Shown here piece by piece: positions 2,496-50,006 of a stretch of DNA of 64,000 nt. A program made the position numbers and the translations under genes. The notes under the pieces are model-generated. The model was not told where the DNA came from and searched no databases. It saw only the letters and a list, made by a program, of their open reading frames with translations. Numbering within the stretch: the first letter of the stretch is position 1; each line of letters starts with the position of its first letter. The DNA is taken from contig OZ316897.1 in the NCBI GenBank assembly GCA_973895155.1, positions 14,631,375 through 14,695,374 on the forward strand, given 5' to 3'. This DNA is from Marsupella aquatica. Its lineage: Eukaryota; Plantae; Marchantiophyta.

Positions 2496-4140
2496 ACTTG
2501 GAAGGATCGAGAGATCTTCCTTTATGGAAACCACACCACAATCATGTTCACGCCAATCAGGCAAAGTGTCATATAGCAACCCACAAAGGAAAATCAGAGG
2601 GGCTGGTTTTCGCCATATGAAGGACGTCTTGGATTTGGAAGGCCGTTTTATTAGGTGGGAGGATGGCCCAAATGCTTTGCTACCTAGGAACTATGCTAGT
2701 GCATATCACAAACTGATTGCAAACCTTTGATGTGTGCTAGAACTCCACTGTGACCCTTTGCAACTACTCCCGTGAGTGTTCATGGAAGCTTATCTATCGG
2801 ATGGGAGCTTAAGGGTCTGGGAGTTTTGGATACAGCACAATCACATTACTTCCCAATGGCAACAGTTTAATGATACAGCTAACCCCAGATGGACTTTCAT
2901 GGTGGTCAACGGTCTCCTATCCAAATCTGACACCCTTGCTCCACTAGCTGGACTCCCCCTACATCGTGCGCTGATTAGGACTGAGGGAAAGAACAATGTC
3001 CATAGGCAACATTTTGGGAGTCCTACGGGCCTTCTGGCTCCTCTATTACAATTCGTTTGGAAAGATGGCCTCCCCTTCCTTGATACCGACACTGCACACC
3101 TGAGGGCAATACAAGGTCCCCTCCATCAAACATTGCATAAGGTGGTGCACAAATGGGCATTGCGGCTGAACTGGTGTCCCAATCCAATCACTCTAGGCAG
3201 ATACCTGGCTTTCCTTTTGCGCTGTAAGTGAGAACTGTTTCTTGTGGCAATTGATCTATAGGATACCGGCTACGCAACATTGGCGATTCCCTTGCCTACC
3301 TACTACTGACTCAAGCACTTGGTGTACCAAATGTGATTCCCATCAACAGGAAGATATTGTGCATTGTATATGGGGCTACACAAAGTCGCATGGTGTATGG
3401 GAGTGGGTGCAGTTTGTTTTGCAGTTATGTGCCTTCTCAAGAGGATGCACCATTCAGTTACAACCTGCTCACATCTTTGTAGGTGCAGCCCTACTCGAGG
3501 AATGGGATATCCCTGGGAGACTTTGGCACATTGAGGACTATCATCTGCTGGTGCTTATGGAAAGATCGATGTGCCTTCATGGATCACACCCAACCAAATT
3601 CACAAGGAGTCGTTCGGAAATCATGGCATTGACTGGGAGTGTATATACGGCGGGACTGGAACCGGCAGAAAGTCAAGATACAATCTGGTAGAATCACTAT
3701 CAGGGAAGCACATCATGAGATGACCATGCACTATGGCACCTCGAATGGTCTTTGGATGATTCATGAGAATATCCTTCAGATCCCGCCGGTCCCTCCACGT
3801 CCACCGTGACATCCCCTCCCCTTGTCAGGCTCCAAAGCTGCACTGCAGACTGACTAACTGAGTCATCCCTCTCTCACGGACCCACTGGAAGGAACCTCGC
3901 CAGAACCTAATCACTGGCCGGTCTTTAGGAGTTAGCTGCTCTGACTGTAGTCTCTAAATGTCTTGTTTAGTTGCCTCCTCCTAAGGCACAGCTTCTGTCC
4001 TGGTGCCAGCCTCCCCGGTTGTTAGCTCTCCAACCTTTGGTCCTTTGGGGTGGACCCTGTTTTGGGTCCCCTCTTTTGTATGCTGGCTATTTGAATGAAA
4101 TTTATTTGATTTTTTTGAGGCAAATAAAATAAAAAAATAA
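2496..4140 (+). mobile_element. Degenerate LINE (L1-clade) 3' region, interrupted by the copia insertion
   Basis: Broken ORFs include a zf-RVT-like motif (CTKCDSHQQEDIVHCIWG…VWEWV, 3242..3691). A-rich tail at about 4122-4142. Confidence 0.7.
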
Positions 4141-4339
4141 AATTATTATAATTGGCACACACAAATAGTGTACAAAATAACCTTTTCCACAACACACGGC
4201 TAAAATAGCCAACGGTCCAGCTTCGCCAAAAGTAGTGATTACTGTAGGTAGTGAGCTACGTCCTCACCTCAAATCTATTACCCCCAACAAAGTAGGCCAT
4301 TTTTTTTCTTGATGAAACACATCTTGGCCCCTGAAGACT

Positions 4340-4600
4340 CTTTCTCATTTCTAGTAGTTTGCATTTGCCCTCTTCTCTTGAGGTTTGGTGGACTCCATCG
4401 TCCTTTTGTCTAAATTGGTCTTTGACAAACAGAGAACAAAAAGAGAGCTATGGCTCTGATTCCCCGCCCCCTCATCTTTTCTCAGTTGCCTTCCCCTCTT
4501 GAGTTTGCTCTTTGTCCTCTCTAGACTCCACTGTACTTTGATTGGCCCAATTTTATTTCTAAATCGGTCTTTGCGAAACAGAGGACAAAAAAAGAGCGAC
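4340..4600. repeat. Imperfect ~150-bp tandem duplication upstream of B12D
   Basis: CTAAATTGGTCTTTGACAAACAGAGAACAAAAAGAG (~4410) vs CTAAATCGGTCTTTGCGAAACAGAGGACAAAAAAGAG (~4560). Confidence 0.6.
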
Positions 4601-5038
4601 TGTACCATGAGGAACTATGCAGCATATACCCGGAATGTTTAGCAGAGGTGGGCCTTCAGCCGTGCGATCGGTCGGCGCCCTCAAGATCGGCGGCGGAGGG
4701 TGCCGCTGTGATCTTCTTAATTCAGTTGTTCCCGCATAAACAAACAAACAAATAATAAAGCGACCATAAAATAATAGAACCACAAAGAGACTAGAAGAAG
4801 ACGAGACGAGGACGAAAGGAGAAAAAGCGCAAAGAGAGAGAAGAGAAGAGAAGAAAGAAAGCACAGAAGCGAAAGAGAGAGGAGATCTCAGAGATGACAC
4901 ATTTGGCTGTCAAGGGAAAGAGATTGTAAGGTGGGCTCGAGGTCGTAGGCCAGATCGGGAGACACCGTGGTGCGGAGCGCGCGTGTGGCAGCATCAGAAG
5001 GAGCAGAAACGTCGGTCGGTTCGTCGACAAGTTCCGCT

Positions 5039-6371
5039 ATGGGAAAGGCATTCAAATGGATCCAGCCTGAGGTCAGTCTGCAGCTGAATGATATCTCTCC
5101 CTCTCCCTCTCTCTCTATTTCTGTCTTCCTCTCGTCCTTTGTTACCCCATTCTGTGGTTCTGATTTCTGGCCTTTTTCCTTTCACTTTAGTATGGTGTTT
5201 CTATCGACAGAGATGACACCATTTTCATTCCCTGCCTTGCCCACGGTGGCGCACGTTCTTTCGAGTTCCCCCTTCGATGTTAGGGTTTTGTCAAACGCCT
5301 CCGGCCTGGGGTGATTCCATACTTCGATGGTCTCTCCAGCTTTCGCTTGCTCTCTTCCTCTCGTTGGTTGTTACTTCACTGTGGTTCTACTTTCGGGTCT
5401 CTCCATTTCCGTTTCGGACGGCCGTTGGATCGACAGAGATGAGGACTCACAGGATCAATTTTAGTATCCTGCTACCCGTGGTTGCGCACGTTCTTTCGAG
5501 GAGTTCCCTCTTCGATATTAGGGTTTGGTCAAATGTATACTGCCCGAGGTCAGTCCACAGTTGGATGGTCCCTCCCACTATCTCTTGCTCTCTTCCTCTC
5601 GTCCGTTGTTAGTTCACTGCGGTTCCACTTTCTGGTCTTCCCGTTTTAATACACCCTTCGATTGACAGAGCTGCAATGAGTCCTAGAGTTGTCAATCAAA
5701 CAATTATGTCGGGAAAAAGGGGATGATTATATTGAGGAGAACACATCTACCCACGAATGTAGATGTGTTGCCTGCAACACAGACTCAGGGAAACTTGAAA
5801 GTATCCAATGAGGAAGACTACTGATTAATTTTAAATCTCCTCTTGCGAGAATAGAATCTGTCGTTTTCGTTCCCTTCTACAGTTGGAGATTCGGGCAAAC
5901 TTAAGACGTCCCTGTTTGTTTCGATGATGCAGATTTATCCTCTGTTCTTGGCTGTAGGTACGGCAGTTGGGTTGTGTGGCTTTGCGATAACTCGCAACCT
6001 TGCCATCAATCCTGATGTCAGGTATACCCTATCTGGTTCATGCTGATTGCCCGTCGCTGTGGGAAAGTAGTGGGCATTTAGTTGCTCGGTTGTATGAGTG
6101 CAATTTTCTTGTTTCTCACATTGAGTGTCTGAAAACTGTCAGATATAGTTCTGGATCTAGATGAGTCTATCTTCTGCTTATTTTTTTTGTCTTTTCATTG
6201 TATTTCTGTAGGATCAACAAGGACGATCGTGCAGCGGGAGTACTTGAGAATTTCAAAGAAGGGAAAAGCTACAAAGACCATGGGCTGAGGAAATACGTTC
6301 ACGACAAAACCCCTGAAATCATGCCTGGACTGAATGGCTACTTCAGCGGCAGCAGCCAAAGCAAATCATAA
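5039..6371 (+). CDS. B12D: B12D / NDUFA4 (MLRQ)-like small mitochondrial protein; exons 5039-5071, 5933-6021, 6212-6371
   Basis: Spliced product MGKAFKWIQPE|IYPLFLAVGTAVGLCGFAITRNLAINPDVR|INKDDRAAGVLENFKEGKSYKDHGLRKYVHDKTPEIMPGLNGYFSGSSQSKS* matches the plant B12D pattern. GT-AG introns keep the frame. Confidence 0.93.
5100..5680. repeat. About 2.5 copies of a ~235-bp unit in B12D intron 1; the two full units carry a reverse telo-box (TTAGGGTTT)
   Basis: Repeated blocks ATCGACAGAGATGA, GCGCACGTTCTTTCGAG and TTAGGGTTT (about 5280 and 5518). Confidence 0.7.
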
Positions 6372-7631
6372 CTTTGTGCTCACTGTGCAGTTCGTGTCGT
6401 TCCTTCTTTGGTGCCAGAAATCGTTGTGACAAAACTGTCATGAGAAATGTTCTGATTGTTTGTTTTTCCTCACACTACGAGGACTTAAATCCATCTCGTG
6501 TCAAGTTGGTTGCTGTTTATTACGCAATTTTACTGACTGTTTACAACGTTTGGAAGAACGGGATCACAAGAATAGTTGATACTTGGTTTTTAGAGCTTCA
6601 ATCTCCAACACTATTGATGCCACTGTTGGCACATAGAAAGTGCAACTTTGCTAACCTTGGAAACTCCTTCAACTTGTGATTTCCGGGAGTCTTGTTCATA
6701 TTACCAGATGAGTTACGGATTGGTGTTGGAATGGAGGCTTCTGAATAATACTGGATTGATTTAATTTTGAGCGAGGCAGGTCTTGTATATGTGCTACCTG
6801 TTACGGGTCCTATTCGCAATTTAGGCCAGCTTGGAGAGAAATTTGATTGTGTTTTACCTAGTGGAGTACCAATACTATGCAAGAGAAGTTTACATCATGC
6901 TGACAGTTTTCTTGTTTCTGTCATAGTCCTCCGTTCCCAATTTAGGTGATTGATTTGAACTAGCACGAGCTCGCTAAGTAAATGCAAACGATATTCTATT
7001 TTCACCCTACTTCATGGGAAGTAGAGAATGCTCATACTTGTGGGGACGAAAGCAGTCAGAATGGTACTGATGTGAACTGCTTCAACTGCTAATCATCATC
7101 TTCTTGCAAGCTCCCAACAAGAGATCTGAATGGTTTTTACAACTGAATTTGTAAGGATATCACATTCCTTTAAGGTTCGTTAACCGCTAACAGGGGTTGT
7201 TTTTTTAGTTACATGCACAGTTGGCTGACAACTTCCACGCCAGTTCATTCTCTCTTTTCAATTGGTATGTAGTGTTAATGTTTGACATGGCTCCATCGCG
7301 GCTCCTTTTTCTCTACAACTTGCTTGTTTTCTTTTTCTTGTCGAACCAAATTCATTCAGTCTACTCTGGGTTCGGTTGTCTAATATGCTTCTTCGATTTT
7401 TGTGAGTTGGTAATGTATTGACAAAAGCAGTTATGTCGTTTCATGCCAACTACCCCACTGTGTGTACAGTTCTGATCACGTCATGTCAATTGTTGTCTAT
7501 GCCGTACCAGCTTTGACGAGTGCTTTCAATTTCCCCGGCACTTTTCATGTTTTGATAGCTTTCTCGCTTCTGGTGTGTCTTTCAGTCGTTCTGTTGTCCT
7601 CTTGCTGATTATACTGGCAGGGAGGTGGGCA

Positions 7632-7710
7632 ATGATGAGCACTTACTAAAATCTGTCAATCCTCTGAATGACTTTATGTCAATTGTGGATAATGGTCAAT
7701 GATGTGCTGA
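7632..7710 (+). ncRNA. C/D snoRNA copy 1 (intact)
   Basis: C 7632-7638, guide 7650-7663, D' 7664-7667, D 7707-7710. Confidence 0.9.
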
Positions 7711-7879
7711 GTCCTTCTGGGAACTTTATTTTGTCAAATGACAATTTTGCATTACTCTAGTATGGGTGTGCAAGGAGAAGTAAGCTCTTCAAGCTTCGGC
7801 AATTTTCGGAGCCGTTTTATGCTTCATGTGAAGACTGGTGTGCAGGACACTCATTGGTTTCCCTGTACTAGAACGTACA

Positions 7880-7954
7880 ATGAGCAGCATGTTATGAATC
7901 TGTCGATCCTCTGAAGAGCTTCGTCACTTGTGGACGAGTTTTACTATGTGCTGG
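7880..7954 (+). pseudogene. C/D snoRNA copy 2 (box C ATGAGCA and box D CTGG degenerate; guide AATCTGTCGATCCT)
   Basis: Clear paralog of copy 1 with mutated terminal boxes. Confidence 0.75.
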
Positions 7955-8169
7955 CTGCCATTCCCAGTACAGGTGGAAGTCAATGTTTTCTCCCTTCGAT
8001 CTTTTTCATAAACTGTCTGTGAAGGTTTGGTGAGCGCGTTATTGTGGATTTGCAATCATCGGAACGGATCTATGCCTCGCATGGATTTCGTTATGAGGCT
8101 TTAAGCTACATGCTGCAAAGACCGTGTTGAAGTTACTTCGCCGGCAGACTCTGGGATTTGTTTTTCGCA

Positions 8170-8250
8170 ATGATGAGCACTTTCTTGCTACTCTGTCAAT
8201 CTTCTGAGTGGCTTCTTGCCGCTCGTGGACGACGTTTCTCTTTCTGCTGA
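8170..8250 (+). ncRNA. C/D snoRNA copy 3 (intact boxes, variant guide ACTCTGTCAATCTT)
   Basis: C 8170-8176, D' 8204-8207, D 8247-8250. Still allows a 12-bp duplex with 18S including one U:G pair. Confidence 0.82.
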
Positions 8251-8360
8251 GAGTGCCTCTTTGAGGTTGTGCTAGTAGTAAGTGTCCACTTCTGAGTGGC
8301 TCAATTCTCTCGGAACCTACTAGGCGTTTTCTGCAGACACTTCGTGGGATGTATTGTACA

Positions 8361-8441
8361 ACGATAAGGGTACTATTGTGAATGTGACACTCCTCTGAAT
8401 GGCTTCATGCCATTGTGGACAACGATTTACTGATGTGCTTA
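8361..8441 (+). pseudogene. C/D snoRNA copy 4 (decayed)
   Basis: C ACGATAA, guide AATGTGACACTCCT, D CTTA. Confidence 0.7.
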
Positions 8442-8552
8442 GTCCCTTCTGGAGTTTTGTGTATTCATTATTTTGCTTTCTCATGAGGTTTACCCAGAAT
8501 GTTTGAGACCATTAATGAAGGCATGTTTGGGTAAGTCATGCATTAATCCACA

Positions 8553-8637
8553 ATGATGAGCATATTATTATGAATCTGTCAATCCTCTGAAGGGCATCTT
8601 CACGCCACTTGTGGATAAAGATTTATTTATGTACTGA
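8553..8637 (+). ncRNA. C/D snoRNA copy 5 (intact)
   Basis: C 8553-8559, guide 8573-8586, D' 8587-8590, D 8634-8637. Confidence 0.9.
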
Positions 8638-8824
8638 GTGCCTTTCTGAAGTTGTGTGCTTGGCGCCAACAAAAAAACAATTTCAAATTCTCCGTGATAC
8701 CTCGATGAAGCATGTATTGCTTAGAATTCTCCGAACCATTTATTAGGTTGCTTTCTTACGATATCTTCCCTCTATGTCGACTGGGCTGAAGCCATTGGCG
8801 GGTATGACGTGCATTCAGACATCA

Positions 8825-8904
8825 ATGATGAGCATATTATTATAATTCTGTCAGTCCGAAGGGGGTCTTCATGCAACTTATGGACAAAGATTTTGTATTT
8901 TTGA
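8825..8904 (+). pseudogene. C/D snoRNA copy 6 (partly decayed)
   Basis: Box C intact, guide/D' eroded (TTCTGTCAGTCCGA), D TTGA. Confidence 0.7.
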
Positions 8905-9005
8905 GTACCTTTCTGAAGTGCTTCTGGTTTCTTTCTTCCTAGTTGTTCCGGTAGTATTTGAGAATCTGTTGAAGTTATTGCGGTAAGGTATGCAATCAGT
9001 CCACA

Positions 9006-9089
9006 ATGATGAGCATAAATTTATAAATCTGTCAATCCTCTGAAGGGCGTCTTCATGCCACTTGTTGACAAAGGTTTATTGTGTGCTGA
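9006..9089 (+). ncRNA. C/D snoRNA copy 7 (intact)
   Basis: C 9006-9012, guide 9026-9039, D' 9040-9043, D 9086-9089. Confidence 0.9.
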
Positions 9090-9180
9090 GTGCCTTTGTT
9101 AGTAGTGGTTGCTTTTTTCGCCCAACTATCTGAGAGTCTTCTGGAGGTATTCGCTGGTACCTTGTGGAGGTCGGTTTACA

Positions 9181-9262
9181 ACGGTGCGCTTATCATTTTA
9201 CGTGTCGATTTTCTAAAGGGCTTCATGTCATTCGTGGATTAAGTTTACTAGGGCAGTGGGCC
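9181..9262 (+). pseudogene. C/D snoRNA copy 8 (strongly decayed)
   Basis: Residual TGTCGATTTTCTAAAGGGCTTCATGTCATTCGTGGA aligns to the unit core; boxes are lost. Confidence 0.55.
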
Positions 9263-9346
9263 TTTCTAAGATGTCGTGCTAGTGTTGATTGTGTCCTTAT
9301 GTTTCGTTGCCCAGTTGTTTTTTGCCTCGTGGCATTTTATTGTACG

Positions 9347-9425
9347 ATGATGAGCATACCATTAAATCTGTCAATCCTCCGAAGGGCGTCAGGCCAGTTG
9401 TGGACAAAGGTTTATTATGTGCTGA
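9347..9425 (+). ncRNA. C/D snoRNA copy 9 (intact; D' CCGA)
   Basis: C 9347-9353, guide 9365-9378, D 9422-9425. Confidence 0.87.
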
Positions 9426-9482
9426 GTGCCCTTCAACATGACCTCGTTTAGTTGCAATTACGGTTTGTTGGCTTGTTGTTTG

Positions 9483-9663
9483 AGAACCTAGTGATGATAG
9501 TTTACCGCTACAGCGTTGGGCGACAGACCTAGTTTACAGTCCATTAATTGAGTAGAAAGGTCTCCTGGTTTGCTGACAGAGTTACTTGCGCTCGTTACAT
9601 CTCGGTTTTGAGTACTGAACCGAAGAGATTCTCGGGTCAGAGTCAACTAACAATCTGAATTCT
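9483..9663 (+). ncRNA. Candidate long (~170 nt) orphan box C/D RNA ending the cluster
   Basis: Box C GTGATGA 9491-9497, box D CTGA 9655-9658, terminal stem AGAA/TTCT. Internal stems AGACCT/AGGTCT and CTGACAGAG…CTCGGGTCAG. Confidence 0.5.
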
Positions 9664-10843
9664 AAATTGTGACTAATTGAGGCTCCTTTACTAGAATTCG
9701 GACGACTTGTGAAGTAGCCATTCCTCTGCATTCAACATTCGGACAACTTGTTAACTAGCTATGTTGCCACATTGGAAAAGAATAGTCCTCTTCGCGGAGT
9801 TTGTGGATTTGAGCCTTACTTTGTATAGACATAATCCGTTTAGAGGAATCTAAATCTGGAGCAACTTGGTAGAATTTGAGGGTCAAGGTTAGTTCTGAAT
9901 GTGCTCCACACATTGAGTTATGAATTAAATATAGCAGACTATGGGAGATCAGCCAAAGGCGGCCAATTTGATACCCGACTGCAGGAGCTTACTGCATCAA
10001 CTCAGCTGAGGACTGTAGTTCAACGCATACCTTGGATTGAATTTGAGTGTTTTGCAGTCGGACTTTGCTTAGATGGCACAATGACCACTTAGGATTATTA
10101 TAGTCTATGGGGCAATCTGAATGTTGATTGAACTTTCATCCCACTTAACCACTTATAGTAAAAGAGGGCAATTGATTGGAATGTGACACTTGGACTCCGA
10201 AGAATTTTCTGGGGAAGTCTCATTTTGCTTGGACTCCGAAGAATTTGCCGGGGGAGTCCCCTTCTGAACAAATGTGGTTTTATATCCAGACATGTGTCTC
10301 GTCTTTCTTGACTGCAAAGAACCTTATTAAGTTACTTGAAGGTGAGTGCCATTCAGGACAATCGGTTCAGATCGCAGCTTGGACCATGATGGGAATCGGT
10401 AAGGAACGCAGGGCTATCTGACCTTAATTTTGAGTGGACTTTGAGGCTGTACCATTCTTGTCTTATATTGAGCTGTATCAAGAAATGTCGGAAGAGAAAA
10501 AATTTCTCACTCTCATAGCGAAACTGGACTCTTTCACCCGTCAGTTTGTGTACTTCCAAGTCTTCAAGCTTCTGCTTCTGGACCCTACTTTTAGAGAGCG
10601 TTTTCAGTAAACTTACCACTTCCTGAACAGCTAGTACTGCTAAATGTGTCAAAACTAGATTCAAATCACGTCCTAGGAAATATACGCTTCGTCCTAGACG
10701 TATAAACTGTGGTGCTCACCTGCCTCCCATTGTTATCAAAGTCCCAAACCCATGACCTTGACAAAGATTCTGATATAGGGTGTAGACTGGCATAGCCTAT
10801 GGCATTCAATGTGTTGCCGTGAGTTTTTGTTCACAAATGAGGT

Positions 10844-11053
10844 TTTGTAGAGCACATTTGGTATGTCATACAACCATCCATTTGAGTAGTGTTTTTATTT
10901 AGATGCCAGTGTCCAATGCAAGAAAAAATTGGCCAGTCATGTGGGACCTTTGTAGAGCACATTTGGTATGTCATACAACCATCCATTTGAGCAGTGTTTT
11001 TATTTAGATGCCAGTGTCCAATGCGAGAACAAATTGGCCGGTCATGTGGGACC
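10844..11053. repeat. Near-perfect 105-bp tandem duplication
   Basis: 10844-10948 and 10949-11053 differ by only a few substitutions. Confidence 0.9.
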
Positions 11054-11912
11054 GGAGAAAAACAAATTTTGATTGTGTGAAGCGCACCTCACGTTGTTTC
11101 TGGGTTCTGAAAATTTAAAGTTAACAGTAAAAATAAAACTGTATAATGTGAATATGAAATCGATAGGGAGATGTAGAGGAGTAAACTAGACCAGACCAGA
11201 ATGGGGTAGGGGAGTTTAGGGTACATTTATATTGAATGTAAAGAGAAAATTGTTTACTAGAATAAATGGTACCCCATATTTAAATAATGCGCCTATTGAT
11301 CGATACCCAGGACAGAAAATATCCGTCGTCCTATCTTCTTTGCACTTCAACCGACGCAAGATGCTTGCCTTTTGGGGAACAAGGTAGTTGAAACGAATTC
11401 ACCCGTTAAAGAGAATAGATATTTAAAACTCCCAGCTCTAATTTACAACTACTACAAAAAACATTTGACTCTTACTAGAAGTTTTCTCATCGTCTAAAAT
11501 CTTAAAGTTTCCCTTCCCTGAAGCTCATATTGTTTTTCATTCCCCGCCCTCCCTCAAGCTTCCCCCCCCCTCTGAAGCTAGAGTTTTTTTTCTTCACCCC
11601 TGAAGGTGAGGTTTTTTTTCTTCCCCGAAAAAGCTGAACTTTTTTTTGCTTGCTTTGGTTTTTGCATTTTTTCTTCTCCCCCACTTTCACATTATGTACG
11701 GTTTACATCATGTGTGAAAAAAACTAGGATACAATGTACGAATTTGATGAAAAAAATCACCCATAGTTTAGGGAACCAATAGAGAGCTGGTAAATTCAGG
11801 CATGTACTTTGGCTGGTATTTGTCCCTGCAATACCCAAAATGCCGATCCGGTGAGGTTTAGGGTCTTTTCAGTACATTCAGAGTCCTTCTGTCGGCACAG
11901 GCCACCTTCATG

Positions 11913-11979
11913 GGGTACCCTCATTGATCAAAGTACCATCATTGATAAGCGTACCCTCATTGATAAGAGTACTACCCTC
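11913..11979. repeat. ~18-bp minisatellite (GTACCCTCATTGATAAGA), left part; continues at 17813-17910
   Basis: The same unit occurs on both sides of the copia insertion. Confidence 0.8.
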
Positions 11980-12275
11980 TGTAAGAAACCGTCGGCTCCG
12001 GACTAGACAGCAATGCGGAAACATGAGAGAGACTCATTCAGACGCTACACCAACGAGACACCCCGAGTGGAGAAACTCCTGAAGGCTCCATAGCAAATGA
12101 AAGTACATGTGAAGAATAAGGGAGAGAGTGCTCTCCCTCCAGCCTATACCCCCCAAGGGGGGCCAAGATGAGTGGGCCTAAACTAAGCGGATCTTATCCT
12201 AATGTAATCTAGGGTTAAAACTAACCCTAGTAAAGCCAAGCTAACTATGTCGGGAACTAGAGTCAATTCCTAACA
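11980..12275 (-). repeat. 3' LTR (296 bp)
   Basis: About 6 substitutions and 1 indel versus the 5' LTR, counted by eye. Confidence 0.95.
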
Positions 12276-12342
12276 ATCTCCACCTTGACTCAAGTTCACA
12301 GAATGAGTCAGGTGATATACAATATGTAACTAAGTAACATAT

Positions 12343-15300
12343 TTACATAGTCACTGGTTGGGCCCTAACATTAATAATATCCACACAATGACTAAAGCTA
12401 CTGGTAGGTAAAACTTTGGTAAACATGTCTGTCGCATTCTCCTCTGAAGCCACCTTCTCCAGAAACATCTGCTTCGTCTCAATCACCTCACGGATGAAGT
12501 GATAACGAATATCAATGTGCTTTGTCCTGGCATGGAACACAGGGTTCTTAGCCAGATGCAAAGCACTTTGACTGTCGCACAGCAGCACCGGTCTTTCAGG
12601 TGAAAGACCCAGATCACTCACCAATCTCCGTAGCCAGATCAGCTCCTTGGTTGCCTCACATGCAGCCATGTACTCAGCCTCAGTAGTAGACAACGCAACA
12701 CAAGATTGAGTTGCCGACTTCCAGCTGATACAACCTCCACCCAACATAAACACATAGCCTGTAGTAGACTTCCTGTCATCCAAGTTACCAGCATAATCTG
12801 AATCTACAAAACCTTCCAACTCTAATGTAGAGTCTGCTTTACCGTCAAATAAGATCCCACAATCTAAGGTACCTTTCAGATACCGCAAAACCCACTTCAT
12901 TGCTTCCCAGTGAAGCTTACCAGGATTTGCCATAAATTTGCTCAAAATGCTAACAGCGTGGGCAATGTTAGGTCTAGTGCATGTCATTGCATACATCAAA
13001 ATACCCACAACACTATCATAGGGAACATGTTTCATCACCAGTCTATCACTCTCACTAGAAGGGCAATCATTCTTTGAGAGTTTAAAGTGGGAGGCCAATG
13101 GAGTACCAACTGGTTTTGCATTCTCCATTCCATACTTGGCAAGTACCTTCTCCAAATACTGCCTCTGAGACAACCATAATTGCCTTTGCTCCCTGTCATG
13201 ATGAATCTCCATCCCTAGTATCTTCTTGGCCTGACCCAAGTCCTTCATTGAAAACTCCTTACTCAGCATTGCTTTCAAATGGGCAACATCAGACTTATTC
13301 TCAGCCAGGATCAGCATGTCATCCACGTACAATGCCAGCACAATGTAACCAAAGCGTGAGTAATTCTCCACCTCCTTCATGTAAATACAACAATCATGTT
13401 CACTTCGTGTGAACCCCTGAGATAACATGAAGGAATCAAAACGCTTATTCCACTCTCTAGGACTCTGCTTCAATCCGTATAACGAGCACAAGAGCTTACA
13501 CACCAAGTGTCTGGTCTTCTCATCAATAAAACCTGGAGGCTGAGTCATATAAATCTCCACATCAAGCAATCCATGCAGGAAAGCAGTAATTACATCCATC
13601 TGATCTAACTCAAGATCATAGAATGTCACAATCGCAAGTAAAACACGGATAGTAGCAAGTTTGACAACTGGTGAGAAAATCTCCGTGTAGTCCAAGCCCT
13701 TCTTCTGGGTGTACCCTTTGGCCACAAGGCGTGCCATCCTGCTTCTTCTTGTACAACCATCTACACGGAACCAGTGTTTTCCCGCGAGGCATGTCAGTTA
13801 AGCGCCAAGTTGAATTCTTCTTCAAAGAATTCATCTCCTTCAACATCGCCTCCAACCACTTATCCTTCTCTGGAGAGGCCATAGCTTCTTCATAGCTAGA
13901 GGGGTCTCCATCTTTAGTAAGCAAAACAACACCGGGATCATCGTCATGTTCAACAATGTGAACACGAGGATTTGCAAAACCAAATCTATCAGGGGGTTGG
14001 CCAAAATTGGCCCTGGTGGAGCGCCTTGGTTGAGGAATTTCTCCTCTACCAGAGGGACTAGCAGCTTCCTCATCACCACCAAGCTCCACCGTAGTGGGTT
14101 CCTCCACCTGTTCCTCCTGAATATCCCGGGGTCTTGACAACCATTCTTTGTCAAAAACAACATTTCTGCTCAGAACTGCCTTGCAATCGATAGGATCCCA
14201 CAATTTATAGCCCTTCTGCCCAGGACTAAAGCCTAGAAAAATATGTTTCTTAGACTTGGGATCCAACTTAGATCTGTGTGTCTGCTCAATGTGAACATAG
14301 GCAGCACAACCAAAAACTCGGAGTCTAGAGTAATCAGCAGGTCTCTTATACCACAACTCAAATGGAGTCTGCATCAACTTACTACTATGCGGTGACAGAT
14401 TGTAGACGTATGCAACTTGGTTGATAGCTTCAGCCCAAAAGTTGTTGGGTAACTTGGACTTACATAGCATGCTGCGTGCTTTCTCCAGTAATGTCCGATT
14501 CAACGGTTCTGCAACTCCATTCTGCTGCGGGGTCTCCGGTACAGTGTAATGACGCTTGAGGCCAAGGTCCCGACCAAATTGATCAAACTCATTGGACTTA
14601 TACTCGCCACCGTTATCGGACCAAACACACTTCAACTCCTTCCCAGTTTGTAGCTCTACCATGGCTTTCCACTCCTTGAAGATCTCAAAGACTTGAGACT
14701 TTTCCTTCATGTAGTACAGCCAACACATTTGAGAGTAATCATCTACAAACGTCACAAAATATCTGGCTCCACCCAACGACGGCTCCGGCGCTGGACCCCA
14801 AACATCCGAATGTACATACTCAAGAATCTCATGAGAATGGTATGAACTAGAACTGAAACTCACTCTCCTCTGCTTGCCGAAGATGCAATCTTCACAGAAA
14901 GAGAGTTTACCAGATTGAGCGCCTTGCAGCAAATCTCTGTTTGCCAAGGCTGCCAATCCTTTACCACTCAAGTGCCCCAACCGTGCATGCCACAAATCTA
15001 TGGCTTGTGTGCGACCAGATGTTGAGGGTGCTTCAATTGAAGTAGCCGTAGATGACTCGATAGCAGGTGTTGCCGCTGCATCCGAACGTTCCACCACGGA
15101 ATCCACATGCTCCACTCTAGGAGCAATGACATCGCCTTCCAAGATGTACAAATTATTCTGCCGTAGCGCTTTAATCAAAGATACATCATCTTTGACGACA
15201 AAGAGCGCACCATCACGTGTAGTGAAATGAGATCCACCAGCTTCCAAAGCACCAAGAGAAATCAAATTCTTAGAGATGTCTGGTATGTGTCTGACTTGCG

Positions 15301-48171: not shown

Positions 48172-50006
48172 ATTTAGGGAGACGCTTCCTGCATTGTCAT
48201 TCAATGCACCTCGATTCTCCCCCACACCCCACTCTCCCCATTTTTGGGTCCCACTTCACTTTCTGGCCAGCCCCATTTTTGGGTCCCCGTTCAGTTTTGA
48301 GGTGGGCACCGATTTGTGAGGAGATTCTAATGCTTGACTGTTTTAACTTCTTCGAAAATAATGTAAAACTAGGTTGTAATATCAATTTTAGGTGATGAAA
48401 TATAAAATAATTATTAAATTTTAAATGGTAATGAGTATGGAGAATTGATGCACTGTGTGACCTAGTGGTATTGGAGCTCAGTTGAGACTACTAGGTGACA
48501 TGTTCAAGGCGTGCAATTTTTCTTTTCTTTAATCTTTAATGGATAGGAATGAACGTTAGAGGGGGTGGGGGTGTCTAATTGTATTTGAACATGGAAATGG
48601 TAAATGAGATATATATGGGGAGTTCAAGTAATTTGGAGCTAGAAAAAATAACAAAAGAGAAACCCATTAGAGGCAGGGATTAAAATTAACCTCTTTTGTT
48701 GGCTTCTTGTACCTGCCCATTGTTGTTGAGAGGTGCCAATCATGTTCCTGGTGGGGCAACTACTTTCAGTTGTAGGAAGAATCCAACAAAAGAGGTTAGT
48801 ACAAGAAACCAACAAAAGAGGTTAGTAGTCAAAAGGCAAACAATATTAGAGGTGGTGTTGAGAAGAAACAGGAGAAGAAAGGCCTTGTGCAACAAGCTGA
48901 GAAAACAAGTAAGACAAAAGAAGGCCCCTATGAAAAGGACACAAAAACTAACCCAGTAAAATTCCCCTATGAAGCGAGTCCAAAAGTCCGTGGTAGAGAA
49001 GACAACAGGGCTAGGATTGGGAAGTGTGCTCCAATTGACACAGGGTTTTGATAGTTTGCAAGGAATTGGCACAAGCATGGGTCCTAATTCTTTGATTGTC
49101 TTGACAAATGTGTCAAGCACAACACCTTTGGTAGACCCTGTTGTTTTCCAGGGTAGCCAACTTAGACCATTTCCAGCCTTGTCCATACAAACAATATGTG
49201 ATTGAGTGATTAATTGTAGGGTGGTAGACTGCCATTGGCATGCCTAGCATCCTGCCATATCTTTTTTGATTTGAAAACAAAATTCAGGAACAAAGTTTTG
49301 CTTCTTATACAATAGGATGTGTGCTTACCATGAAATCAATGGTTTAGGAGATAAATGGTTTTTTATGTGATCATGTCTCCTCAAATTTTCTGATGTTGCT
49401 ATGTGGCGCATCCTTGTCTCATGTCCCCAAGTCCAATTTTTTTGGATCTTATTTTAATTTTAATCCCTGCCTCTGATGGGTGTCTCTTTTGGTATTTTTT
49501 CTATCTCCAAATTCCTTGAACCCTCCGCATATATATCTCCTTTACCATTTCCATTTTCAAATACAATTAGACACCCCTGCCCCCTCTAATGTTCATTCCT
49601 TTCCATGCCTTTGATTATAGAAAATAAAAGTTGCCGTTGTGAGCCTCTAACACGCCAACTTGTAGTCTCAAGTGAGCTCCAATACCACTAGGTCACACAC
49701 TACTTCTGTGCATCAATTCTCCATGCTCATGCTCATTTAAAATTTAAAAACATTTTATATTTTCTTGCTTAAAATTGATATTGTAACTTAGTTTTATATT
49801 ATTTTTGAATAAGTTAAAACAGTCAAACATTAAATTCTACTCAAAAATCTGTGCCTCTCTCAAAACTGAACTGGACCCAAAAATAGGCTGTCCTGAAATT
49901 GAAGTGGGACCCAAAAATGGGGAGAGTATTCCGGTGGGTGTGCGGAGGAAAATGGAGGGGAAAAATAGAGGTGCACTGAATGACAAAGCAAGGAGTCTCC
50001 CTGAAT
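48172..50006. mobile_element. Mutator-like (MULE) foldback element with ~520-bp TIRs and an internal transposase remnant
   Basis: 48172-48690 is the diverged reverse complement of 49453-50006. Flanks TCCTTTTCA / TCCTATTCA form an 8-9-bp TSD with one mismatch. Internal ASCTCP…H (SWIM-like) plus a K/R-rich stretch. Confidence 0.85.

Follow-up and report, generated by a model that had tools for sequence, protein, structure and literature searches.

Does the run of short repeated units that lies downstream of a B12D gene in the liverwort Marsupella aquatica consist of RNA genes, and if so, does it represent a new system or a familiar one? The array was followed up in a 64,000-nucleotide (nt) stretch of DNA (GenBank assembly GCA_973895155.1, contig OZ316897.1, positions 14,631,375 to 14,695,374 of the forward strand), the whole of which is called the window here and numbered from its first letter. 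An earlier note, made from the letters alone, had read the units as nine to ten copies of one small nucleolar RNA (snoRNA) of the box C/D kind, with a guide to 18S rRNA, and had suggested a new dosage or diversification system reminiscent of mammalian SNORD115/116. As judged from the sequence, the array is very probably a tandem cluster of the liverwort counterpart of snoR14/SNORD110, maintained by selection and subject to birth-and-death decay.

A tandem array of one box C/D RNA

Eleven recognizable copies of one box C/D unit of ~80-85 nt lie on the + strand between positions 7445 and 9430 (Table 1). Nine of them, at 7632, 7880, 8170, 8361, 8553, 8825, 9006, 9181, and 9347, are those of the earlier note, and both a repeat search and a purpose-built covariance model place them there on the + strand. 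Its training set was the five best copies, its structure comprised a terminal stem and an internal hairpin, and it was run on all 64 kb with filters off. It recovers its five training copies at 97-113 bits, as it must by construction, and the four non-training copies at 41.9-72.6 bits (E 1e-6 to 2e-13 for 64 kb). Beyond these nine units, the model finds no further match with E < 0.5 in the 64-kb window.

The two remaining copies emerged from local alignment of the spacers to the array copies, judged against 200 shuffles of each. The faint relic that had been noticed at ~7445-7525 is real, although its recognizable part is a short core; this core aligns to the first intact copy, c1, with a z of 5.1, and none of the 200 shuffles aligned as well. 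The strongly decayed copy cX, in a long spacer, had been overlooked. It agrees with c5 at 35 of 46 positions (76%), the register being kept from the C box, across the guide and D′, and on into the hairpin, a fit again reached by 0 of 200 shuffles. The count of nine to ten copies therefore stands as far as the nine units and the relic are concerned, and rises to 11 with cX.

Table 1. Copies of the box C/D unit, and the B12D gene upstream of them. Scores are those of the array's own covariance model.
Feature	Positions	Strand	Description	Model score
c0, relic	7445-7530	+	Only the D′-to-hairpin core (7471-7493) recognizable; aligns to c1 in register	Below detection
c1, intact	7627-7714	+	C box 7632-7638; exact guide 7650-7663; D′ CTGA 7664-7667; D box 7707-7710; 4-bp terminal stem	107.8 bits (itself a training sequence)
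c2, pseudogene	7872-7957	+	C box lacks 3 nt (ACAATGAGC); D box CTGG; single guide change, G-U compatible	52 bits, E 7e-9
cX, strongly decayed	8027-8110	+	C box TGGTGAG; D′ CGGA; 4-5 guide changes	10.6 bits (weak, at 8022-8106)
c3, boxes intact, guide weaker	8165-8256	+	Guide ACTCTGTCAATCTT, with two changes, one of which allows a G-U pair	
c4, pseudogene	8356-8445	+	C box CGATAAG; D box CTTA; 3 guide mismatches	72.6 bits
c5, intact	8548-8641	+	Exact guide 8573-8586	
c6, pseudogene	8820-8909	+	C box intact; 2-nt deletion at the guide/D′ junction; D box TTGA; nearest copy c5 (79%)	56.8 bits
c7, intact	9001-9093	+	Exact guide 9026-9039	
c8, pseudogene	9176-9263	+	All three boxes broken; 6 guide changes	41.9 bits, E 1e-6
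c9, intact	9342-9429	+	Exact guide 9365-9378; D′ variant CCGA; D box intact	
B12D gene (complex I MLRQ-type)	5924-6021, 6212-6371 (exons)	+	Upstream of the array, on the same strand	

The boxes are intact in five of the 11 copies, and the others have a broken C and/or D box. The C box RUGAUGA and the D box CUGA are exact in c1, c3, c5, c7, and c9, and this pair is broken in c2, cX, c4, c6, and c8. In DNA letters, the C box reads ATGATGA in c1, c5, and c7 and GATGATGA in c9, and the D box of these four copies is CTGA. Of the internal boxes, D′ reads CUGA, or CCGA in c9, and C′ reads UGUGGA, a degenerate form; a 14-nt guide lies directly against D′. The exact guide, AATCTGTCAATCCT, occurs four times, each time within the array.

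Pairwise identity between copies ranges from 59 to 86%, and the spacers, 87-216 nt long, are alike over only the ~15-25 nt that flank each unit, the remainder being unalignable. Tandem Repeats Finder reports no tandem repeat for the array because the units are too diverged. A box-and-stem scan of both strands from 6372 to 12300 returned the array members and no other canonical C/D candidate. Just 3′ of the array, at 9491-9574, there is a GTGATGA motif with a CTGA 80 nt on, which could belong to another C/D snoRNA; a clean terminal stem is lacking, and Rfam has no match for it.

The guide and its predicted target

The 14-nt element 5′ of D′ is predicted to pair with the conserved 18S rRNA segment AGGAUUGACAGAUU. 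Such pairing would direct 2′-O-methylation of the first U of AUUG, the equivalent of Arabidopsis 18S U1235: counting upstream from D′, the fifth base is an A, and the modified residue would therefore be the U paired with that A. In other words, the D′ guide register selects the first U of GGAUUGACAG in 18S, and both the guide core and its spacing from D′ match the Rfam consensuses of snoR14 and SNORD110. The prediction made earlier from the D′+5 rule, methylation of the first U of GGAUUGACAG, holds, and this is the snoR14/SNORD110 site. The equivalent human site, that of SNORD110/HBII-55, is 18S Um1288. In Arabidopsis, SnoR14 has been assigned to 18S Um1235, mapped by RiboMeth-seq, and also to 25S Um803 (PMC8053127), and a survey of Neurospora tabulates as equivalents CD44 (18S-Um1227), S. 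pombe snR82, snoR14, and HBII-55 (PMC2780460). Each intact copy would be expected to assemble with fibrillarin, Nop56, Nop58, and Snu13/15.5K.

The array RNA and snoR14 are both box C/D RNAs of ~85 nt whose guide core, UCUGUCAAUCC, stands at the same distance from the CUGA that follows it, and both address the same 18S nucleotide. They differ in one guide base, which is A in the array and G in the Rfam consensus, and no conserved second guide, directed to 25S, is evident in the array 5′ of box D. The search of Rfam that had been proposed for the array gave a divided answer. When Rfam is searched in E-value mode, the best matches are to SNORD110, at 23.6 (c1, E 0.13), 21.2, and 19.7 bits, and snoR14 matches c7 at 21 bits (E 0.83); both families belong to clan CL00076. 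What these alignments draw on is the C box together with the core UCUGUCAAUCC, which a single base separates from CUGA; the register is that of the array. The other half of the answer, at the curated cut-offs, is taken up with the adverse results below. Despite its sub-threshold score, the array RNA is predicted to represent, in a liverwort, an ancient guide family that spans the eukaryotes.

Several results weigh against the identification as a selectively maintained snoR14/SNORD110 cluster. At gathering thresholds, Rfam gives no match in the whole window, and the cut-offs of SNORD110 (RF00610, 64 bits) and snoR14 (RF01280, 40 bits) are not reached. The second guide, directed to 25S in Arabidopsis SnoR14, is not conserved among the copies. 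Between the B12D stop codon and c1 there is no telo box, site II element, TATA box, or upstream sequence element of the snRNA type, and no AATAAA. Finally, a maximum-likelihood tree built from ten of the copies supports none of its inner branches and yields no order of duplication. Regarding the second guide, the 15-20 nt 5′ of box D are very different in c1, in c3, and in the group of c5, c7, and c9, and no new conserved guide is found there or elsewhere in any copy. The sub-threshold scores also give the locus its practical interest, as a place in a liverwort genome where the curated thresholds of Rfam miss a guide for a conserved 18S methylation: because nothing matches at gathering scores, annotation at those thresholds would leave the array blank.

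Evidence for selection on the RNA

In the five intact copies, 26 of the 29 columns that make up the boxes and guide are invariant, compared with 19 of 56 in the rest of the RNA body (Fisher p 5.7e-7). All five can form a terminal stem of 3-4 bp, with one compensatory change as well as G-U changes, and a D′-C′ hairpin of 3-4 bp with one fully compensatory change. Across the same copies, 85% of the stem cells are paired, vs. 25-47% once the partners on the 3′ side are shifted by 1-3 columns. With five sequences, this covariation is supportive of selection on an RNA, not conclusive. Since the boxes and guide are near-invariant, the rest of the RNA variable, and the spacers essentially random, the pattern points to RNA genes under selection and not to a satellite. 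The earlier note had argued the same from the constancy of boxes and guide in the best copies amid poorly conserved spacers of variable length, and both its description and its conclusion are upheld by these counts.

The tandem arrangement and the retrotransposons of the same region could be taken to mean that the units are satellite DNA, pieces of a transposon, or copies of a coding exon, with boxes that resemble those of a snoRNA by coincidence. This is barely conceivable: Tandem Repeats Finder sees no array, the unit lengths span 143-293 nt, and conservation is restricted to boxes, guide, and stems. Moreover, no open reading frame spans the units, and there is no Pfam domain nearby and no tRNA gene.

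It is also very improbable that the whole array is a dead, unexpressed remnant, with the working methylation-guide gene elsewhere in the genome. Over half of the copies are indeed pseudogenes, no promoter was found, and many of the snoRNA copies annotated in animals are pseudogenes that are not expressed (PMC12309372). However, five copies retain every box, both stems, and the guide amid spacers that have diverged to randomness, a state that requires purifying selection, or else that a live copy has converted the others very recently. The decayed copies themselves are still 59-79% identical to the intact ones. Because this identity persists while the spacers are randomized, it suggests that most of the decayed copies were long under constraint and have been dying at different times.

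Probable birth and death of the copies

Under selective maintenance of a snoR14/SNORD110 counterpart, the array would have grown long ago through repeated unequal crossing-over or tandem duplication. Redundancy would then have let copies die singly, leaving five presumed working copies and six in decay. The mixture of intact and dead copies fits the birth-and-death evolution that had been proposed for the array. The lesions differ among the decayed copies, and none is shared. On the maximum-likelihood tree, the decayed state requires four changes, and constraining the decayed copies to a single clade is rejected (approximately unbiased test, p 0.029). As the decayed copies share no lesion and form no single clade, they appear to have decayed independently.

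Along the array, the order of decayed (D) and intact (I) copies is D I D D I D I D I D I. Amplification of a dimer of one intact and one dead copy was considered as its source and rejected on account of the unshared lesions, the rejected single clade, and the absence of a period-2 pattern in the flanks, where similarity pairs c5-c6-c7, c4-c9, and c1-c4. Nor do intact and decayed copies alternate strictly, since cX (8027-8110) adds a second dead copy in a row. An intact copy never has another as its neighbor, one or two dead copies always standing between them, an arrangement with a chance probability of 6/252 (0.024) for five intact copies in 10 or 21/462 (0.045) for five in 11. This observation is post hoc and marginal, and its evidential weight is limited. 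That closely spaced working C/D units interfere in assembly or processing on a common precursor, or that the dead copies serve as spacers or as exons of a repeated host transcript, is a long shot; if true, it would amount to a spacing rule for polycistronic snoRNA arrays, so far undescribed. In any event, the array is a compact natural case of snoRNA birth and death, in which apparently working copies stand beside pseudogenes at several stages of decay, and it could help to calibrate tools that separate expressed plant snoRNAs from pseudogenes.

Transcription of the array

The copies are most likely released from a single long + strand precursor, made by RNA polymerase II, through cleavage and exonucleolytic trimming, a route proposed because polycistronic precursors of this kind are usual for plant snoRNA clusters (PMC7671301). 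The + strand contains 36% T vs. 20-24% A, unbroken from the B12D stop codon (6372) through the array to 9425, and this bias of T over A in 6372-9425 is the strongest AT skew in the window. This composition agrees with the + strand being the transcribed one. A search for tRNA genes found none, which disposes of a tRNA-snoRNA dicistron.

Whether this precursor begins at a promoter of its own is a separate question. The array might instead be carried, without its own promoter, on an extended 3′ untranslated region (UTR) or read-through transcript of B12D. The B12D exons were searched one by one: exon 1 matches Pfam PF06522 (E 2.5e-10), and exon 2 shares 79% identity with Marchantia paleacea Mapa_007016. 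The array lies on the same strand, 1.1-1.3 kb 3′ of the B12D stop codon; the stretch between them is devoid of promoter motifs and of AATAAA, and the T-rich bias runs on continuously from 6372. Two telo boxes, typical of plant promoters of the translation apparatus, are found 5′ of B12D (5281 and 5519), and snoRNAs within 3′ UTRs are known in both Arabidopsis (PMC2875012) and Neurospora (PMC2780460). On the other hand, absence of motifs is weak evidence where liverwort promoters are poorly described, and 1.1 kb is long for a 3′ UTR. On balance, B12D is unlikely to be the host.

Just 5′ of the B12D start codon, at 5052-5650, there are three tandem copies of a ~238-bp unit, of which the second and third each contain one of these telo boxes (AAACCCTA, - strand). 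The repeat could be a repeated promoter module.

Another possibility is a non-coding host gene of repeated short exons, similar to UHG, GAS5, or the SNORD116 host transcript, with one snoRNA per intron and release by splicing and debranching. Motifs of the GTAAG type occur 18-20 nt 5′ of c5 and c7, GTATGA precedes c6, and a pyrimidine tract followed by AG is found at 7760 and 8942. The spacers are T-rich, like plant introns, and C/D clusters in Neurospora are organized in this manner (PMC2780460). Nevertheless, 5′ splice-site-like motifs are no denser in the array (0.8 per kb) than window-wide (1.26 per kb per strand), such a motif accompanies two copies only, and good 3′ sites number only two. 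Furthermore, plant snoRNAs usually come several to a precursor and are processed with no need of splicing (PMC7671301). An intronic host is for these reasons quite unlikely, and a polycistronic precursor that is cut and trimmed is the preferred reading of how the copies would be expressed.

Comparison with known snoRNA clusters

Single-family clusters are familiar in plants. The U14 cluster of maize comprises four genes, and the intronic snoRNA clusters of Chlamydomonas are mostly same-family, having arisen from local duplication. According to PMC7464842, the earliest plant snoRNA clusters to be described were closely linked, polycistronic U14 genes (Leader et al., 1994). Arabidopsis has same-family linked clusters of two to three genes, among them snoR155a/b/c, snoR79a/b/c, and snoR135a/b (PMC2875012). 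The liverwort array resembles such polycistronic clusters in its single strand, close linkage, spacers of ~100-200 nt, and origin by local duplication. It differs in that 11 copies are present instead of the usual 2-4, with more than half of them dead, and in that polycistronic expression is here a proposal. Only its size (11 copies) and its high share of pseudogenes are unusual. It is a large but ordinary plant snoRNA cluster, and no new mechanism is indicated. The suggestion of a new dosage or diversification system is unsupported in view of the canonical target, the lack of a new conserved guide, and the same-family plant clusters already known.

The setting of this guide differs among lineages. 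Human SNORD110 is a single intron-encoded gene. The guide and the equivalent 18S uridine are common to the array, SNORD110/HBII-55, Neurospora CD44, and S. pombe snR82. CD44, however, is tabulated as a single intron-encoded gene (PMC2780460), in contrast to the multi-copy array. Arabidopsis snoR14-1 is part of a mixed cluster with snoR15 and snoR86-2 (PMC2875012), whereas the liverwort array holds a single family.

The mammalian SNORD115/116 arrays hold tens to >100 copies, with gene conversion among them, and are expressed in the brain. SNORD115/116 and the array have in common a single-family tandem arrangement of C/D units, birth and death of copies, and some degenerate copies (PMC12429941). 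SNORD115/116 RNAs are orphans, encoded one per intron of repeated host units, and are strongly homogenized and imprinted (PMC12429941). The predicted target of the array, by contrast, is canonical rRNA, its copies are 59-86% identical with no sign of homogenization, and there is no detectable intron-exon repeat structure, splice-site-like motifs not being enriched. The resemblance drawn by the earlier note does not extend to these properties, and the array appears to be old, with copies unlike one another, which sets it apart from SNORD115/116.

A metagenome scan for the guide followed by D′ returned 29 contigs of unknown eukaryotes, several of them with 2-3 linked copies. None is a close relative, and they are not alignable outside the boxes and guide. 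One of the metagenome contigs, JACLAC010011884.1, has intronic snoRNA clusters in a protein-coding gene at 2900-4700, where one intron holds a different C/D snoRNA and, after it, the same 18S guide twice in tandem. Both snoRNA families recur in a later intron, with a third copy of the 18S guide. By eye, the host gene resembles a small GTPase of the ARF/ARL type.

Other features of the window

On the - strand at 12343-13737 lies an open reading frame of 464 amino acids for a reverse transcriptase of the Ty1/Copia type (Pfam RVT_2, E 8e-58). Closer to the array, at 10830-11060, a unit of ~105 nt is present in two direct copies, as seen by eye, and has the look of a minor local duplication or a piece of a transposon. 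Far downstream, a stretch of ~150 nt at 48678-48830 has weak Rfam matches on both strands (MIR4221, 34 bits, and mir-3914, 32 bits; both far below cut-off). Because both strands match, it suggests a long inverted-repeat hairpin, possibly a miniature inverted-repeat transposable element or a young miRNA-like locus.

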